Source: Lytechinus pictus (lineage: Eukaryota). From it: DNA of 64,000 nt. Both the position numbers and the translations under genes were made by a program. Below are positions 26,407-61,594 of this stretch, piece after piece. Location: the NCBI RefSeq assembly GCF_037042905.1, contig NC_087259.1:24924001-24988000 (forward strand). Reading direction: 5' to 3'. Each line of letters opens with the position of its first letter. The stretch's first letter is position 1. The notes beneath the pieces were generated by a model. That model ran no database searches and was not told the origin of the DNA. It was given only the letters and a program-made list of their open reading frames with translations.

Positions 26407-27107
26407 ATAAAAAGTATGTATGTATATGTACACTCTAAAAAATGGAAAGGTGGAAAGTGGTAAATCACCCTTTGAAAGAGCCGAGGAGTGACCGCATTTA
26501 TAATAAGGATGGAAAATGCTGCCATGCCTTGGCCCTTGGCCTAGATACAAGTGAAGATGTCAGACATGTGTATAAAGAAGACATTATAAACATGTAACTT
26601 TTACTGTATCCTTTACATTTTAGGCAAATTAGCGATTTATGAGTGCTAATTGGTATCCAAAGCAGACTCGGCTCTACATGATTTTGTAGCAAAAGCTTAA
26701 TATAATTCAAATGTTTGACCAAAGGCAGATGAATATGGCTTCAGGCTTAATAACCACCTCCTTATTCTTAGGACAACCTGCTCATAAAGAACATGTTTCT
26801 TGTCTGAACTTTAAGATTATTGGATTACAATGTATTACTAAAGAACCTGTCTATAAAAAACATGTGATCATAAAGACCACCTGATTATAAAGGACTGTTT
26901 TTCTTGTCTCCATTGAGTGGTCTTTATAGACAGCTAGGCTCCATTGTAAATTTGTAATGAATTTGCAAAGCATGGTAGAAGGCACAGGATTTCATGTTAT
27001 AATGTTTTTTTTATCGAGTACATGGTATTACTATTTGTCTGAAATTGAACACATTGCAACATGCTAATCATTGGCTACCCATGGGCTATATGCTCCATAT
27101 GTCTCTG

Positions 27108-50545: not shown

Positions 50546-50618
50546 ATGTCGTCTCCACCAGCTAAAGTTAGGAAAGAAGAAGTCACGAAAAATGGGCAAA
50601 ATGCCCAGGAATCAGAAA
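50546..50618 (+). CDS. SET: SET/TAF-I exon 1 (MSSPPAKVRKEEVTKNGQNAQESE)
   Basis: aaaATG context, and the N-terminus resembles TAF-Ibeta MSAPAAKVSKKE. Donor A|gtgagt, phase 1 matching exon 2. Confidence 0.82.
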
Positions 50619-51244
50619 GTGAGTATAACCACATGATTCTTTACACTTCTATCAATCACTGTGACCGTTGAAAAATGTTTTGGCCATCTTGATAAGTTAG
50701 GGGACACCTTGATCCGTTCTCATGTCGTCCTCGAAGCGTGGTTCCCTATTGTTGTGTACACTGGTGCATGTGTTATGGCGTTTGTACGTATGATGTGTAC
50801 GTGGGTCTATGGCGGGTGTCTATTGCACTGAGTCTGTATGGAGTTATGTGCGTGTACTGTAGTGTCGATGGTTGTGGCTGTGCAGAACGGGTCGCCTGTG
50901 CTGTGAATAACGTTTCTGAATGAGTATTTTAAGCTATGATTGAAAACACTCTGTTTAGTAATTAGAACCATTATTTTCTCCAAAGGCAAAGACCAAACAG
51001 ATTCAGACTGAGACCGACTTTAAAGTCTAATGAATAACAAAATAATTTTGATAGCAAATGAGGAGAAAGTGCCCAAAATCCAAATATCAGACACTTAGCC
51101 TTAGGCCTACATTCTAATTTTCTAAGCATAATTGGACCAAAACAAAAATACAGTCATTGGATCAAATGAAACTCATGTGTGTATCCAGTACAAATGTTGA
51201 ATATTAATGTCATATAAAAAAATTGACTAGAATTGAAAAAATAT

Positions 51245-51691
51245 CAGTAGAGGTGCACGGCCAATATTGGAGACTGTCTCCAATGTGGGAGATTATCTCC
51301 AATATCAGAGACTTTTGTAAAGAATCTGGGTATCCAATTTCAGAGACAGTCTCCAGTTTTGGAGTCCAATTTCCTTTGTTTACATTTGCTGCAAAAGGAT
51401 TAACTTGGCGGCAAATAAAAATGTGATAAGCAGATTCCTCATGAAAAATTACCCCTTTTCACCGTCTACTTTAAAAATTCACTGTCTACTTTTGTTTTGA
51501 TAAGGATTTTTCTTGTCAATCACACACTAAACAAATGGGCTTCTGACCTCAGTGAGACAAAATTTTGGGTGGAAAAAATCATGCTTTTGTTGGTGTTGTT
51601 TCTTTTGTCCTTTTGCAAAGCAAGTCTCCAATGTGGGAGATTGTCTCCCTTATTGGAGAGAGTCTCCCATATTGGCCGTGCGCCTCTACTG
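51245..51691. mobile_element. MITE with ~40-bp TIRs (CAGTAGAGG...) and a 5-bp TSD AATAT
   Basis: AATAT|CAGTAGAGGTGCACGGCCAATATTGGAGAC ... GTCTCCCATATTGGCCGTGCGCCTCTACTG|AATAT, with internal GGAGA/TCTCC repeats. Confidence 0.88.
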
Positions 51692-52873
51692 AATATGGTA
51701 AACAGAAATTATTTACTTACTACCAGAAGCTTGTTTTTTGCCAAATTATTGGGCATGCAAAGTTGTGCGCGGCGATCAATTTCAGTGGTTTAAATTGCGC
51801 TCTAATTTCTAAACACCAAAATAATTGCTTGATTGTTGAGAAAATAACTTAGCTGTGCTAATGCCGATTTTTATTATTACTATCAATAATTTTGATATAG
51901 AAAACGGTAAATAATAATTATTACTTACCAATCGGCACTCTTTCAACTCGCAACATCGGATGTCTTCACTCAGCTGCGTGCGACTTCGTTCTGAAAATGA
52001 GCGTGCTTGTCAACAGCATGCATTTCTGATTCAATCGGCCAATATGTCCGATGTTTGGGAGAGTGCCATATTTGGAAGGGTGTCAAATTTCCTGCCGTGG
52101 GGAACACCCGCAGCGGCCATTGCAGATTTTCTTGTGATAGATCGAACATGTGCGATATCGACAGTGATATTTCTGGCGGAAATCACTTCCCCCTTACAAG
52201 ATTTTTTTGGTCATCGATTTTTTGGAGTCCATAATTAGCGAGGGTCATAAGAATCTTTGGAAGTCAAAATCATGGATTTCACCTAGCCTTGAGGACTCCG
52301 TGATGATTAAAAAAATATTTTTACATACTTTTACATCACCAAGCATTGACACGGTCCCCATACAGTACGTGCGAAAGCGAAACATGTAAACACGGATGAA
52401 TTTCCCTTGGAAATCCATCTTGAGACCTAGAAATCGCGTAAATTTGTTGTATTTTATTTATCTATACACCTTCATACGCCTATAAACATGAATAAACTTT
52501 TCAACAATTCAAACACTGCTAGTTCTAACTTCAAACGGCATTCTACACTCAGACACTGTAGTTTGACAAGTCAGTAGATGTTAGCTAAGTTATGCCCAAT
52601 TTAATGAAAACAGACTATTTACAGAACCCCTTCAGCATTCTTTATTTACTCACTATACTATAACCATAAAGTCAGAGAACAGTAGTCTTGGTTTACTGTC
52701 CTGAGCTGAATCTAAATTGTTTTCTAGAGAGTGAGTTAAATGATGCTGCTGAAATGTAGTTGTTCTCACCTGAATTATAGTTCTATTTTTGGAAAGTCAT
52801 ATGGATGCTAATAATGGATTAAGGTATCCTTCCCGAATCCACTTTAAGCCTCTAGTGCTAATTGTGAGGTTAA

Positions 52874-53472
52874 AGGTCAAGTCCACCCCAGAAAATTGTT
52901 TATTTGAATCGATAGAGAAAAATCAAACAAACATAACCTGCAAATTTCATCAAAATCGGATGTAAAATAAGAAAGTTATGACATTTTAAAGTTTCGCTTA
53001 TTTTTCACAAAACAATTAAATGCACAACTCAGCGATATGCAAATGAGAGAGTTGATGATGTCCATCACTCACTATTTCATTTGTTTTTTATTGTTTGAAT
53101 AATACAATATTTCAATTTTTACAGATTTGACAATACGGACGAACTTAACTTAACCATAAACTATTAAAATAATTGTAATTCCACATGTTCAGGGAGAAAT
53201 AAAACTTTGTTTCACTTGACAAGGAGGAGAAAATGAGAATATTTCATATTCCATATAATAAAATACAAAAGAAATAGTGAGTGGGTGATGTCATCAGTCT
53301 GCCAATTTGCATACTGACCAATATGTGCATATAACCGTTTTGTGAAATTAAGCGAAACTTTAAAATGTCATAACTTTCTTATTTTACATCCGATTTTGAT
53401 GAAATTTTCAGTGTCTTGTTGGATTTTTCTTTTTTTTTTCAAATCAACTTTTTGTTGGGGCAGACTTGTCCT
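52874..53472. mobile_element. TTAA-target (Kolobok-like) MITE, full copy, in SET intron 1
   Basis: TTAA|AGGTCAAGTCCACCCCAG ... GACTTGTCCT|TTAA. Confidence 0.9.
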
Positions 53473-53817
53473 TTAATAATATCCAACCTTACTGAATGTC
53501 ATCAACAGTGGACCACAACAAACTTGGGCAAACTGTATCGCATTTGGGATATTTTCTTTTGTATCAGACATTTGCCAATAATTATACATGTAATTTCTCT
53601 TACAATTCTTATATTTAACAATTTCATGTGTGAATTTTTTTTTTTGAATAGATGTACCAGTATACAGGGGGTGTGCTCAGGGCAGGTGCCCATGATGTTT
53701 CAACTAGGCCCATCATGAGAGAACTATTCAAATAAAATTGAAAGACTGAAAGAAGAAATTAAGAAAATAATCAAAAAGAGAGGTCAGGGTTGCGTTCTGT
53801 TTTGCCCCATTCATGCA

Positions 53818-53962
53818 AGGGGTGTACCGGGCTGAAAATAATTTTGTCTGATAAAATAGAGTAAATTCACCAAGCAAATCACTGAAAATTTGATCAAAAT
53901 CTGATAACAAATAAAGAAGTTATCGACTTTAAAGTTAAACATTAGTTTGTAAACAGTTATAT
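53818..53962. mobile_element. One-ended fragment related to the 56738-57319 palindromic MITE
   Basis: AGGGGTGTACCGGGCTGAAAATA...AGAGTAAATTCAC...ATCAAAATCTGATAACAAATAA matches its left arm. Confidence 0.6.
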
Positions 53963-54603
53963 GCTAATGTGGGAAGCTGAGCTGAGCCAGGCTGGAAAAG
54001 ATACCAGTAAACAGCAAGATAATGTGAACCATTTACATCCATTCATGAACTGAGCTCTTATTTATTCCTGAATAATCTAACTTAATTGATCCTTACCATG
54101 AATTTTAGCCACTTCGAGCATCGGAAATGACCATATTCTGGCTTCGATCGTGGCGTCTTCTTTCGAATTTCTTAGTCATATATCGCTAAACGAACGCAGA
54201 GGGCAGCAACACGTTCAATGACTTGATTGACTTCGAATTTCAGCTAATTCCAGCCCATATCAAAACGAGTGTACGGCAGACTGGGACTTATTTGAAATTG
54301 AATAATGAAATCAAGATTGAAGTCAAAATAACTGAAAAGGAGGCACATTGCATGATCAGAGACATTCCTTGCCAAGAAGAACCTTGACCTGAGCATTCTG
54401 TCCTGCAATGGAACCTGAGGCATATTGCCTGTGTCTATACCAATAGAAACTTTATCTTTTTAAATTTTGCATAGTGGAACAAATAAGAGGCATACTGTTC
54501 ACCATATTTTTAGCTCTTAAAGTTAAAATGATAGATGGATGGTGTAATGGGAGAGATGGAAATTTAAAGTCAAGAAAGATAAAGATTAGATAGAGTGTCT
54601 GTG

Positions 54604-55489
54604 AGCCTGTTCAGACCGGCAGAGATAGCGCGATCTAGCGCGCTAGATCGCGCTATCTCTGCGGTGTGGAAGGTACAACGTCGTTTCGGTCCGCCCAACA
54701 GCGAGCCACGGCGAGCCAAAACGGCGTGCCACTGGAGCACCTCTTGGGGGTGGTCCACGAGAGATAGCGCGGTCTAGCGCGCGCTATCTCTGCCGGTGTG
54801 AACCCGAGCTACGATAGCACGCCGGAAGTCATCAAATTGTTATGGCAACACGCTTCTCGACTGACACGGCTCCTCGAAGCACAGTGTTTTGTCTCTCCAG
54901 GCTTCGGCGAAGTTTGCGACATATAAACTTAAATGTTGCTTTACTCATTCTGAAATTCTCCTTCCAGTCCAGGTCGGTGAAGCTATTCAGTACTACATTC
55001 CAGAAGCCATCACTCCGAGGCTTCGACCATAACCCACGATCGATCACTGTCCCCATTATCAAAACCATCAGGCTCTGAATTACCCGACGACGACGCTCAA
55101 AAAGCAACCTTTTAAACTTTCGTCGTCTCTTCTGGGAGTTCGCTTCTATCCATTGTTGTATATCTAAAGTTACAGGTACATCCATAATCCTGCTGCGATC
55201 CTGCTGTGATCACGTCCACAAACACAGTTAAAATACAAGAGTCTAGAATCTAGATTAATCAAATTAGAAATACATGCACAATGTATACAACGCCATGAAA
55301 TAAACGTAGGCCGGCTAGCATAATAGGCACAGCGATATCGAGCTCTCAACTAACTAGTACGGGTTCGTAATAGCGCGCGAAATCTTTGACCGCTCTGACC
55401 TCATGACGTCACGCGTCATGGCAACAGGACCTCTCAAAAAAGGGGGTGCTACGATAGACCGCGCTATCTCACTGCGGTGTGAATCCGGC
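54604..55489 (-). mobile_element. PIF/Harbinger transposon relic with subterminal GAGATAGCGCG repeats
   Basis: CpG-rich. Repeated GAGATAGCGCG / CGCGCTATCTC and GGTGTGAA motifs at both ends enclose a transposase fragment. Confidence 0.8.
54832..55185 (-). pseudogene. Truncated Harbinger (HARBI1-like) transposase N-terminus
   Basis: The 117-aa ORF has W..PRS..FW...WKENFRMSKATF...L...T.LR.AVSVEKRVAI, typical of the helix-turn-helix region of PIF/Harbinger transposases. It stops before the DDE catalytic domain. Confidence 0.82.
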
Positions 55490-55791
55490 GATCTCATGCT
55501 GTTTTTTACTGCTTTTTTAATTCAAATGATAAAACTATCATGCAGACTCACCTTGATAAATCACTTTCGATTTCTTTAATTTGCAAGAGCTGATAACCCC
55601 TACAGGGGCGCCTTGGACTTCGGAGGTGACTTAGCGACCCTTGGCTATTTTCCAGATTTTTTTCTCCAGAATATCATGCCTGTATTCAGGACTAACTACA
55701 TGGTGAACTAATATAAGGCATTTCTACAATGCATGTAATAGAAACAAGTTCATTTGATGACCATACATTCATAACTTGATTTCCTGTTCAG

Positions 55792-55988
55792 GTGATTTAT
55801 ATCCAGACAAAGAGCACCAGCAGGCGATCGAAGAGATCGACAATGTCCAGAATGAAATTGATAACCTGAATGAGATGGCGAGTGAGGAGATCTTGAAGGT
55901 GGAACAGAAGTACAATGCACTGAGGCAACCATACTTCGAGAACAGAGCAAAACTTATCGACAAGATACCTCACTTCTGGGCCACCACT
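55792..55988 (+). CDS. SET: SET exon 2 ([41 protein letters not shown]...KIPHFWATT)
   Basis: Near-identical to the SET dimerisation helix ([25 protein letters not shown]...IP.FW). Ends at a U12-type donor GTATCCTTT. Confidence 0.95.
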
Positions 55989-57543
55989 GTATCCTTTCTG
56001 ATATCTGAGCATGATAGGAATAAACAATGAAGTTCAAATCGTAAATATATTCCATACTTTTGAGACATGATAATGAGTAAAAATTAGTAAACAGACAAAC
56101 ATTAGTGTTTGGCGGCCAGGGGTAAATTCATCTGGGGTGGTATTCTGAGTGCGTTTTATCTTAGCTGTATAGCTGTTTTAATTTATAGGTATTCTGAAAA
56201 GTGCTATAATTGCATGTACATGTAACTTGTGTTAGATATTTTGTTATACCTTGGGTGTCATCTTTCTATATAACGCTCTTCATGCACTGCACGCAAATAG
56301 CTTTTGGTGCCATCAAAAATCTTTTAGCAACAATTATGCTCCAGAGGTACAACAGGGTCGGTGGCATTTTAACTTGTTTGCAGCACAGAGATTGTCTTGC
56401 TTCATGTTAGGTTATTTTTACAGGTTTTTTTTTATACCTCGATAAGAGGATATACACACCAAATTACTGCTGCTTTTGCCACTCAAACACATGTCCTGAG
56501 AATGTTTTCTTTCGATGCCTGTTTCCTTAAAGGTGACGTTCCCATTATGGTAACTACAATGGTTATAGGGCCCAATGAAAGTCAATGTTATATAATAGTT
56601 GATAATCAATATTACCATAATTGAAAACTTATGGTGGCTACTGGTTAGATGAATAAGGCAACATAATTTGACAAAATTTTATTATTAGCTCATTCATAAC
56701 CCCCTGATCTGGTATGTCTTGGTTATGAAAAACTTAAAGGGATGGTCCGGGCTGAAAATATTTATATCTTAATACATAGAGTAGAATTCACTGACCAAAA
56801 TGCCGAAAATTTCATCAAAATCGGATAACAAATAATAAAGTTATTGAAGTTTAAAGTTTAGCAATATTTTGTGAAAACAGTCGTCATGAATATTCATGAG
56901 GTGGGCTGATGATGTCACATCTCCACTTTCCGTTTTCTTATGTTATTACATAAAATCATATTTTTTTCATTATTTCATACTTGTGTGAATAATATGTCTC
57001 CCTTATAATGAAATAAGTTGCAGCAATAAATATCTAATGCACTAAATCAGTTGTCATTCCAATTTTTCTAGTTCTTGGAGGAAAAAATTTGAATAAACCT
57101 AATTTCATATAATAAAATACAAAAGAACAAGTGGAGATGTGACATCATCAGCCCACCTAATGAATATTCATGACGACTGTTTTCCCAAAATATTGCTAAA
57201 CTTTAAAATTCAATAACTTTGTTATTTGTTATCCGATTTTGATGAAATTTTCGGCATTTTGCTCAGTGAATTCTACTCTATTTATTAAGCTATAAATACT
57301 TTCAGCCCGGACCATCCCTTTAAGTGCAATATCAAGAACGCAATGACAGTTTTGCATATTTTGTGCCTCTTTGCCACAAGGAGTTCTTTCACTGAGCTTT
57401 TATGTATATGAACTTCTAACAAGATTTCTGATTAGATATAATATTTTATTGGTGTAGACCGGAAATGTTGCTGTATATAAATTAAAATTGAATTTTTTTT
57501 TGCATCTTCCGTGAATTCTCCTTAACCTATCATTTTACTTCAG
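55989..57543 (+). other. U12-type (minor spliceosome) GT-AG intron, SET intron 2
   Basis: 5' splice site GTATCCTTT (55989-55997), branch site TTCTCCTTAAC (57516-57526) about 18 nt from the CAG acceptor. Splicing joins FWATT|FTHHPQ in frame. Confidence 0.92.
56738..57319. mobile_element. Young palindromic TTAA-target MITE with ~190-bp near-perfect TIRs
   Basis: TTAA|AGGGATGGTCCGGGCTGAAA ... TTTCAGCCCGGACCATCCCT|TTAA. The arms stay complementary through ...CACATCTCCACTT / AAGTGGAGATGTG. Confidence 0.92.
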
Positions 57544-57666
57544 TTCACACATCACCCTCAATTATCAATGTTGTTAGACGAAGGAGACGAAGATGCACTA
57601 CAGTACCTTTCAAAGGTTGAGGTCAAAGAATTTGACGACATTAAATCAGGTTACAGAATTAATTTT
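57544..57666 (+). CDS. SET: SET exon 3 ([22 protein letters not shown]...[12 protein letters not shown])
   Basis: 41 codons of the NAP domain (HPQ...[10 protein letters not shown]). Donor gtaagt. Confidence 0.95.
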
Positions 57667-58091
57667 GTAAGTATGGCCATTTAAGTTGCTTCATTTATAT
57701 AGAGAGTATCACAAATGATATGACATTTACAATTTTGATTGAATAGTGTCCTACATGCTGACATTTGTTACTACTTATTTTATCCATTCTGGAAAGTGAA
57801 CTTAAAAAAATTCTTTCCGAGGCAGAAACTCAAGGAATGTCAAAAAGTTTTTAAAATCTTCTTGAAAAGTCATTGAATTTTTGCTATAATGTTTGACACC
57901 TTATCAAGTTGATTATGATTAAGCTGTAAAGTTAATGTCTAAGCCCTTTTACTCATGGTCAATTGGTCATAAAAGGTAAATATTTTTCTGCAATTGAGAG
58001 TGATAACATTTTGGGGAATTTTTAAAATCTGAAGGCATACAATGTATGTATCCTCTATCAATTTGCTTTTTTTTTCTACCCTCTTCCATAG

Positions 58092-58205
58092 TTCTTCACA
58101 CCCAACCCTTACTTTGAGAATGATGTAATAAGCAAAGAGTTCCACTTAAATGAGACAGGAGATCCCAAATCAAAGGCAACGCCCATCAGGTGGAAACCAA
58201 ACAAG
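58092..58205 (+). CDS. SET: SET exon 4 ([25 protein letters not shown]...IRWKPNK)
   Basis: ag acceptor and gtaagt donor, 38 codons. Contains the NPYFEN...KEF NAP motif. Confidence 0.95.
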
Positions 58206-60261
58206 GTAAGTCCATTGGAAACAAGATGGAGTTTAGGCCTGAGTCATGCCAGCGAATTGAGTTTGGCATTCCAGTTGAACGATGTTGGGACGTTGAAATA
58301 ATAATTTAAAAAACTTGTGTTTGCGCATCAGTGATGCAAATGCTTCCTCTTTTTCAGCTTTTTATCCTTTTTTGCCGTGAAAGTACTGCAGGGTTTTTTT
58401 TCTAAAAATTGTATTATACACATATCAGAGAAATTTGAAAAATACTATTTTTACATCCAAAATCACCCTTTCATCCCTTCATTTTGTCGGGTTGTCACAC
58501 TTGGTTCCCAACAGCTAGATTTCTTTGTATCACATGTATTGAACAATGTTGATTCCCCATCAACATAATCTGAATCTGAATTAGCATCCTGTCTTTCGCA
58601 TCTGAAATCGATAGAAAGTCTTTTGCATCTGCTACCAAGCCTACCCCTTCTCTCTCTCTTAAAAAATTGAGATTTTGGAAGAAACTGGTATATAGGGCTT
58701 AATTTATCTATTTTTTCAAGGAGGAGGACAACAAGGATAAAGAGGAAGATGGGAAGAGGAGGATTAGAAAGAGGAGGAGGAGGAAAGAAACTGGTATATA
58801 GGTATCCCGCATGCAGCGCTCGGCAGAGTTGCAGCTCCTAAGCCATAGTTTTGCTTGTAAGTTCATAGCATAGCCGCTTGCCATTGGAGGGGCAGTTACC
58901 TCAGAAACAAAAACCTGAATTTCAGTTGGGGAGGGGCAGGGAAATTCTACAACATTTTTTTTAATTAGAAAATTGGGTATGTATTTGTAAAAAAAAAAAG
59001 CATATTATATATGGGGTCACCTCTATGGCCGTACACAGCATTGATGGGGCAGGCGGCAGTTTCCCTTTCCAGCCCCACCTAAAAAAAAAAAAAAATGATG
59101 ACACTTTTTTGTAGAAATTTTGACTTCACCAATCTTGTGTTCCAAATCTTTCAATTTCACCATCAAAGATGTGCAAGTGCCCTCAGTGAAAAGCTTGATC
59201 ATGTCGCTTTCTTGCTTTCAAGGTTGTTTTGACCAAATTTGTGCATTTCCTACACCATCTGGAAAATTTACCAATACGGAACTAATAACCATTGAAAAAT
59301 TTGACGGAGCCTCCTCCCCCCCCCAAAAAAAAAAGGTTGGTCCCTGGGATCTTTGCCTCCCCCATATCCAGGTCTGCTTCCGGTGCGCTTGCTGATGTTT
59401 ACAACGTCTTCTGCAAAGGATTCTACTATATCATGCACTACTTGTCACCTCTGGGCGGTTTGCAGTTTCAAATGTGCATGTCACATCACAATCAAATGCA
59501 TGGAGATTGCTTGGTCCTGCTGGGCCGAATTGGTTATTGCCAAAAACCATAGAACCTAGACAAGAAAAATAAAGAAATATGACATTCCAATCCAGCTTCC
59601 AATCCTTTAATTCATTGTGAAATGGTTAAAATGAAAAAGAATACTGTTTTTCTCAGATGAAAATCACATGGATTGATTGTGCTGCTGGCACTTGTTGGAA
59701 CACTAGAGTGGGAAAAAGTGTGGTTGGAGTCTGATCGCATTAGACAGATTCCGGTGTGCTTGGATGGTTGGTTGGCTTGGGCCTTATGAAGATATTCACA
59801 GGACTCTGTAGTAATACTGGAATTTGTCTGACGTCTGATCACATTCATGTCGCATTTTCCAGTATCCTGATGAAACAAGTGACAGTAGCATTATTCATAA
59901 TTCTATCAGAGAAAAAATATTTTGTGTTCAGTTTATTTTGTTTTTTCACAATATTGACATTCAAATTCAAACTTTATATCAATGACATGTAAATATGGTT
60001 TGCATGTCATATTTCTGAATTTCTTTGACAGGATGAGTTGTGGTGGTCCTCAATTTTGATGCACATTTTTTTTTTTAGCTGCAGTGCATCAGGTCTCAAG
60101 GGCACTTTAGATTTCTGATTATGGTTTGGAAATCAACATTGTTATTTATAGTTGGGAACAAATAAATCCTAATTCTGCCCAATTCTAAAGATTACTACTG
60201 GTTGGATTGCACTGAGTTCCTACTTGTTTATTATCATATAAAATGTCTGTCTTTTTTGCAG

Positions 60262-60429
60262 GATCTGACAAAGAGAAATCTGGGTACCCTCAAGGATGGT
60301 CGCAAGAGGACACACACGGACAATGAAAGCTTCTTCTGTTGGTTCACAGAGCAATCAGAAGCAGGGGCAGACGAGCTCGGAGAGGTGCTCAAAGACGACA
60401 TCTGGCCCAACCCATTACAATTCTTCTTG
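60262..60429 (+). CDS. SET: SET exon 5 (DLTKR...ESFFCWF...[21 protein letters not shown])
   Basis: 56 codons with the SFF.WF and [18 protein letters not shown] signatures. ttgcag acceptor, gtgagc donor. Confidence 0.96.
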
Positions 60430-60469
60430 GTGAGCAAACTGAATTACATGTAGCTGTAGTAATGGTAGA

Positions 60470-60770
60470 GATAACAGTGATTGTAGGGTAAGGGTGATAG
60501 TCGTGGATAGTGGCAGTTTGGTGGTCGTGAAGCGGGATGTGGTAATGGGTTGGTCATGGAGTGGAGATGACAGGTGGTGGTGGTGGTGGTGGTGATGGTA
60601 ATGGTGTATGGTGATGGTGTATGGTGATGGTAATGGTGTATGGTGATGGTAATGGTGAATGGTGTGTGGTGTACTAAAGGATGGGGGGATATTGGTGACG
60701 GAGATGTGCTAAGAGTGAAGTTAGGGAGTGATGGTGGTGGTATTGTGATGATCATGGAATGGTAATGTCA
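60470..60770. repeat. Degenerate (GGT/GAT)n low-complexity tract in SET intron 5
   Basis: GGTGGTGGT and GGTGATGGTAATGGTGTAT repeats. Confidence 0.85.
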
Positions 60771-60889
60771 GTGTGGTCAGGATGGGGGGGGGGGGTCTGT
60801 CAATAGATTTGATATCCATTGTGTAACATGGGCCTTATGTTCTTTATTGGTATGCGTGTGTTAAAGAAATGATCGTCTCCAACTCATAG

Positions 60890-61075
60890 GTGCCTCCTGC
60901 TGAGGATGAGGGAACGAGTGACATCATGGACAGCGGAGAGCTGGAAGCCCTTGACGAGTACGACGAGGGAGAGGATGACGATGACCTCGATGATGATGAC
61001 CTTGATGGAGAAGATGACTTAGATGGTAGCGGGGGTGAAGACGATGACATCGAAGGAGAGGATGATGACGAGGAC
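60890..61075 (+). CDS. SET: SET exon 6 (acidic tail, VPPAEDEG...DDDED)
   Basis: catag acceptor and gtaagt donor, 62 codons, D/E-rich as expected for the SET C-terminus. Confidence 0.9.
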
Positions 61076-61504
61076 GTAAGTTGCGTTTATATTTATGTTG
61101 ATGGATATCCATAACCCTCCTTAACTATGATTCGTTCATGCTATTGGCATGTACTAAATACTTTTTGCATTGTGTGAAAGTGACATGTACCAAATGGGAA
61201 AAGAAGGTAAATCAAACATTTTGAATAATTTTCTATTGAAAGAAGTATATTTTTGACTGTGTTATGCTATGTTATATTAAATTTTTTGTACATTAGTCCT
61301 TTTGAATTGATTGGCTTGTTAAGGTGTTGACTTCTTTTAAACCCACACACCCACAATCCTGACTGAATTGACAGAGTATTTTTAATGATTATTTTCTACT
61401 TATTTTCAATATTATTTAAGTTGTTTTCAATATGAAGACAGTGATTTCCTTGATGCCAAATACTTTTAAGCTAAATTGTGCATTTGATCCTATCTGTTTT
61501 GCAG

Positions 61505-61594
61505 GATGAAGATGATGATGATGATGGCGAAGGTGACATCGTTGAGGAGGTAGAGGGTGACGACGATGATGGAGGCGATGATGGTGGGGACTAA
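61505..61594 (+). CDS. SET: SET exon 7 (acidic tail end, DEDDDDDGEG...DDGGD*)
   Basis: tttgcag acceptor, 30 codons to TAA at 61592-61594. The total CDS is 951 nt (316 aa). Confidence 0.88.
   Translation, partial: DEDDDDDGEGDIVEEVEGDDDDGGDDGGD

Follow-up and report, generated by a model that had tools for sequence, protein, structure and literature searches.

The window analysed here, a 64,000-nt stretch of sea urchin DNA with a run of 995 N at 17366-18360 (an assembly gap or masked sequence), carries a SET/TAF-I gene on the + strand. Its coding span (50546..61594) is divided into seven exons, all on the + strand, with an open spliced translation of 316 aa and an acidic C-terminal tail. Exon 1 (50546-50618) was placed by the overhangs of RNA reads, as was the start of exon 6 (60890-61075). 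Exon 2 (55792-55988) ends in IPHFWATT and is covered by RNA at a depth of 35-137, and exon 3 (57544-57666), reading FTHHPQ to GYRINF, is joined to exon 4 (58092-58205) by the junction 57666^58092 in RNA. The following junction, 58203^60260, is also present in RNA, with a cut movable by 2, and leads to exon 5 (60262-60429), whose end lies near 60432 in the RNA data; exon 7 (61505-61594) is attached through the junction 61075^61505, which was inferred from sequence only. Exon 2 matches the human SET chain 7mto_A at residues 4-64 (E 1.3e-24), and the match of exon 3 to residues 65-105 of the same chain is its direct continuation; matches to plant NRP1/2 and to NAP were weaker than the SET match. 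Because exons 2 and 3 align consecutively to human SET, we identified the gene as a SET/TAF-I orthologue. An intron had been predicted between FWATT and FTHHPQ of SET, and indeed the junction falls exactly between human SET residues 64 and 65.

RNA data from three raw-read runs (X20, X22 and X23) and one contig set (X1) were placed on positions 54700-60500, and the orientation of the reads assigns SET RNA to the + strand. The splice that the original prediction proposed for intron 2, 55988^57544, was recovered as an exact GT..AG joint in all of these data sets. It was covered by 22 reads with 16 starts in X20 and by 23 reads with 21 starts in X22 (both rRNA-depleted RNA of organism A), by 280 reads with 115 starts in X23 (a cDNA library of organism B), and by one contig at a depth of ~3,100 in X1 (Logan contigs, organism A). 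Apart from repeat-derived joints, no competing junction was found among those listed, and none of the ~325 junction reads used an alternative GT donor for intron 2. In the SET coding exons, organism B (X23) differs from the window by fixed changes at 55931, 55982, 57618, 57642 and 58127, which indicates that organism B is a close relative and not organism A itself; within the runs of organism A, positions 55931, 57588 and 60372 of the SET coding exons are polymorphic. In SET intron 1, reads oriented opposite to SET were observed over 54700-55475, with a depth of ~17 at 55282-55475 in X22, and a 581-nt contig skips 54829-55152 with the non-canonical ends TC..CA. These opposite-strand reads and the skipping contig may reflect a transcript antisense to SET or an indel variant of 324 nt.

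Intron 2 (55989..57543, + strand) is 1,555 nt long, with GT-AG ends and a junction found in 4/4 runs. At its 5' boundary the sequence reads TTC TGG GCC ACC ACT / GTATCCTTTCTG from 55989 (the slash marks the exon-intron border here and below), and at its 3' boundary GAATTCTCCTTAACCTATCATTTTACTTCAG is followed by TTC ACA CAT CAC CCT CAA, encoding FTHHPQ. As this is how the downstream exon opens, the intron is in phase 0. Part of its length is due to a MITE element (56738-57319) of 582 bp, whose terminal inverted repeats of 197 nt show 96% complementarity; with its flanks the insertion covers 56734..57323, with TTAA at 56734-37 and 57320-23, and without the element the intron would measure ~970 nt. 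In the genome, 40 or more copies with 97-98% identity were found on many contigs, and a first look gave ~3,000 candidates. The element is young and present in high copy number, with TTAA target duplications that resemble a piggyBac-like target site. RNA reads from both strands pile up over the MITE, loose read ends fall at 56733/56734 and 57323, and the remaining joints inside intron 2, located in the repeat, have non-canonical ends or opposite-strand geometry. We attribute both the two-strand pile-up and these odd joints to the MITE.

The original prediction had called intron 2 a U12-type intron on the basis of a U12-like donor and a branch box ~18 nt before the CAG, and both elements were found in place. 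The 5' splice site of U12 type, GTATCCTTT (55989..55997, + strand), directly follows TGG GCC ACC ACT (FWATT) and agrees with the /RTATCCTTT U12 consensus at 9/9 positions. The branch-point box TCCTTAAC (57519..57526, + strand), in which the presumed branch A is 57525 or 57524, agrees with the TCCTTRAY consensus at 8/8 positions. The 3' splice site CAG (57541..57543, + strand) is given by the sequence and by the RNA junction; from the end of TCCTTAAC to the junction there are 17 nt, and from the second A of the box (57525) to the last intron base there are 18 nt. This branch-to-3' distance is above the published optimum of 11-13 nt and above the ~9-11 nt of the orthologues described below. The last 25 nt ahead of the acceptor are 80% pyrimidine and, on composition alone, the 3' end of intron 2 is compatible with a U2-type intron as well.

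We therefore considered whether intron 2 might belong to the U2 type, with a donor and a branch region that are similar to the U12 consensus by coincidence, a reading that draws on the GT-AG ends, on the fairly pyrimidine-rich 3' end and on the fact that each motif, taken singly, occurs in the window at chance frequency. In 128 kb of sequence from the window, GTATCCTTT alone was seen twice against 0.66 expected, and TCCTTAAC with a YAG within 5-20 nt was seen once against 0.77 expected. The significance of the motifs lies not in their frequency but in their position on RNA-verified exon ends: at the background rates of the window each motif has a chance rate of ~5e-6 per position, and both sit exactly on the verified splice sites. 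The second copy of GTATCCTTT in the window (26606-26614, + strand) has neither an open upstream frame nor a downstream branch box and is most likely a chance occurrence; among the other RTATCCT sites of the window (26606, 52824, 12881, 13125 and others), none lies in an exon context and also has a branch box downstream. A coincidental resemblance is also difficult to reconcile with the donor of intron 2, which could pair with U1 at few positions, agreeing with the U1 consensus CAG/GTAAGT at 3/9 against 5-8/9 for the five other SET donors. The latter (GTGAGT, GTAAGT, GTAAGT, GTGAGC and GTAAGT, with RNA support for 4/5 junctions) bear out, for the SET gene and in 5/5 cases, the earlier statement that the other introns have U2-type donors.

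The urchin intron can also be compared with catalogued minor introns. According to the rule of MIDB, a catalogue of human and mouse introns (Olthof et al. 2019), the minor 5' splice-site score has to be at least 10 points over that of the other matrices and the branch-box score above 65 (PMC6717393), the branch box being sought in the 40 nt ahead of the 3' end with an optimum at 11-13 nt (PMC6717393). The urchin intron satisfies the motif logic of this catalogue, with a minor 5' splice site and a branch box inside 40 nt. The human minor introns of SRPK3, WDR27 and NAIP in MIDB have an intronic 9-mer identical to GTATCCTTT and near-identical CCTTAAC boxes (PMC6717393); the urchin intron differs from these entries in belonging to another gene and in its branch box at 18 nt from the 3' end, not 11-13.

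The genome encodes a full set of minor snRNAs, with scores above the Rfam gathering cut-offs for all four: U12 in 4 copies (109-115 bits), U11 in 3 copies (100-112 bits), U4atac in 2 copies (92 bits) and U6atac with scores of 135 and 99 bits. The 5' regions of these snRNAs carry GAGUAAGGAAAAU (U12), AAAAAGGGCUU (U11) and AAAGGAGAGAAGG (U6atac), which are the known pairing elements of the three RNAs, and the U12 snRNA encoded here contains a GUAAGGA stretch to which TCCTTAAC is complementary. In the mechanism that we propose from what is established for the minor spliceosome, GUAUCCUUU, at the intron's 5' end, would pair with U11 and later with U6atac, and U12 would pair through GAGUAAGGAAAAU with UCCUUAAC, leaving a bulged A that lies 18 nt ahead of the CAG. 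Given its donor, it is reasonable to infer that intron 2 would be removed by the minor spliceosome; as this donor matches the U1 consensus at only 3/9 positions, the major spliceosome should be unable to take over. Retention of intron 2 would add 13 extra codons followed by a stop, so that a functional SET mRNA needs the intron removed.

U12-type introns had been described in the original prediction as often rate-limiting, and the RNA data allowed us to look at the steady-state retention of intron 2. In the unique bins of the intron (56058-56639), depth was 0 in X20 (exons ~36), ~1.0-1.3 in X22 (exons ~20) and 0 in X23 (exons ~125-137), and in X1 contigs across the unspliced boundary had a depth of ~5 (exons ~2,300). 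Unique intron 2 sequence thus stands at ~0-5% of exon depth in the total-RNA libraries, and the neighbouring U2 introns of SET have depths of 0-0.9 in the raw-read runs. In steady-state RNA there is no convincing difference in retention between intron 2 and the adjoining U2 introns, and with depths this similar slow, regulated or rate-limiting splicing of the intron is unsupported at steady state, although a kinetic delay would be compatible with data of this kind. Splicing that looks efficient, together with the long branch-to-3' distance and the pyrimidine stretch, would also suit a hybrid or dual-use intron, removable by either spliceosome, in which case SET output would not depend strictly on the minor spliceosome. 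We regard this as very unlikely, given that the donor offers no usable U1 site and that no alternative GT donor junction occurs among the ~325 junction reads.

Homologous sequences were collected by phmmer with the 65-aa peptide of exon 2, which returned mostly ORF-style fragments on genomic contigs that run into the intron. Among the exon-2 fragments that read through the boundary and do not continue into exon-3 coding sequence, 51 continue with VSF and 12 with VSL. Since GTA TCC TTY and GTA AGT TTY both encode VSF, the DNA was checked, and in 4/4 VSF fragments checked in this way it was GTATCCTT[T/C]. U12-type motifs at the same site were found in five SET sequences. A 98-kb ENA contig (L010) has GCA/GTATCCTTT with the branch box TTCCTTAAC, whose branch A lies 11 nt before the 3' end; a Tara Oceans scaffold whose exon 2 is only 62% identical (L023) has ACA/GTATCCTTC with GCCTTAAC; and a metagenome contig (L107) has GCT/GTATCCTTG with TTCCTTAGC. 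Another metagenome contig (L028), which covers the donor only, has the donor GTATCCTTT, and the sequence of a related urchin (L026), which covers the donor side only, has GTATCCTTTCT. The exon 2 peptide of this related urchin is 97% identical to that of the window, with DNA changes that are mostly silent, and beyond the first ~16 nt its intron is unalignable, the donor GTATCCTTTCT being kept. Two further matches, P0029 and P0139, are transcript contigs and have no introns.

At the identical site, U2-type introns were found in Trichuris suis (L024; GCC/GTAAGTTCG, with GTAAGT) and in an unlabelled contig (L022; GCA/GTAAGTGTC, in an intron of 55 nt that has a pyrimidine tract). The exon-3 peptides of L107 and L022 are very similar, which places the change of class between fairly close lineages. 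The site is thus occupied in distant SET orthologues, by U12-type introns in L010, L023, L028 and L107 and by U2-type introns in Trichuris suis and L022; the intron is old within the SET lineage, and some lineages have converted it, in place, to U2-type. The U2-type introns that Trichuris suis and L022 have at this site also speak for a coincidental resemblance to U12 in the urchin, but this reading would leave unexplained why the motifs were kept in five other SET sequences despite the divergence of the surrounding intron and, with the weak U1 pairing and the exact placement of both motifs, we judge it extremely improbable. With its motifs compared to the consensus and to catalogued 12-mers, we conclude with high confidence that intron 2 of urchin SET/TAF-I belongs to the U12 type, has GT-AG ends and is spliced constitutively. 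The U12 class is supported by the motifs, by the exact RNA junctions, by the full minor snRNA set and by the same-site motifs in the five SET sequences.

The conversion of U12-type into U2-type introns was modelled by Burge et al. 1998 and is discussed in Moyer et al. 2020 (PMC7367187). As in this class-conversion model (PMC7367187), SET has a phase-0 U12 intron and, in other lineages, a U2-type GTAAGT intron at the identical site; unlike in plain class conversion, it also has a second state, a U2 intron located 18-19 nt downstream at CAG/GT. In the SET gene of Alligator sinensis (L021), FWVTTFVNHPQ is encoded within a single exon with no intron at the urchin site, and the gene splices 19 nt downstream, in phase 1, at CAA G/GTATGT with a pyrimidine-rich acceptor, as a U2-type intron; the three later alligator SET introns (after YRIDF, KSGK and QYYL) share their positions with introns of the urchin gene. 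The earlier suggestion of loss or conversion in other lineages is borne out by the U2 GTAAGT introns that Trichuris suis and L022 carry at exactly this site and by the alligator gene, which has no intron there and a U2 intron 19 nt downstream. Consistent with the alligator gene, SET/Set has no entry among the listed human and mouse minor introns. In L027 and ~18 distinct metagenome contigs, a phase-0 intron begins 18 nt downstream, at CAG/GTN right after HPQ, and all of their donors are U2-like; these ~19 distinct contigs may stem from few related hosts and do not count as independent lineages. In the metagenome scan, 41/80 loci were intron-less across both sites in a cDNA-like manner, and these were excluded from the evidence for intron loss.

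Wherever both sites were readable, only one of them was occupied, and never both together, and the 18-nt spacing between them corresponds to the six codons FVNHPQ. A tentative and rather unlikely idea is that the U12 site after FWxTx and the U2 site at CAG/GT after HPQ are alternative states of one ancient arrangement, in which the bilaterian ancestor would have had both introns around an 18-nt FVNHPQ micro-exon and one or the other was then lost, or in which the intron was relocated. Vertebrate SET would thus have been freed from its dependence on the minor spliceosome, with the paralogues TSPYL2 and TSPY keeping the U12 intron.

These paralogues, vertebrate TSPYL2 (TSPX) and TSPY, belong to the same superfamily as SET, being genes with a SET-like NAP domain, and each has a catalogued GT-AG minor intron, with the donors GCA/GTATCCTTC in TSPYL2 and GTT/GTATCCTTC in TSPY. 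The GCA ahead of the TSPYL2 donor fits the Ala codon of FWxTA, and the minor intron of TSPYL2 and TSPY may plausibly lie at the position homologous to the urchin site. In TSPY and TSPX, the conserved exons of the NAP domain come after an exon 1 that is unique (PMC6498724).

A Pfam NAP scan of the genome gave one other NAP gene, a NAP1L-like gene on contig 9, whose exon encodes GIPGFWLTIFKNVDIL and GIPGFWLTIFKNVDILGEMVQ uninterrupted, so that the site has no intron in this gene. Since urchin NAP1L reads straight through the site, the intron is common to SET and not to NAP1L. The proposal that it is an ancestral intron of the NAP family is supported for SET only: the intron is old within SET, but the urchin NAP1L paralogue lacks it at this site. 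In the same NAP1L-like gene, four tandem copies lie 169 nt apart (G000:C9:4392988-4393638, L014-L017), each of which matches Pfam NAP positions 129-173 with one in-frame TAG. They could be candidates for duplicated or mutually exclusive exons, or a tandem repeat within an intron.

In animals that keep the minor spliceosome, a small share of the introns is regularly of the U12 type, and one in SET is in this respect an expected feature. In our literature search no link between SET or NAP1-related proteins and U12 introns was found; a paper on U12 introns in insects does not mention Set, and the main text of IAOD names no echinoderm. Intron 2 of urchin SET is thus an ordinary U12-type intron, individually undescribed in the literature searched.

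In conclusion, SET, which is abundant as a histone chaperone and inhibits PP2A, joins the genes whose expression should require the minor spliceosome. This requirement is expected in echinoderms and in several other invertebrate lineages, unlike in human and mouse. With a U12 intron at the site, a U2 intron at the same site and a U2 intron displaced by 18-19 nt, SET offers a series in which the conversion between intron classes may be studied.
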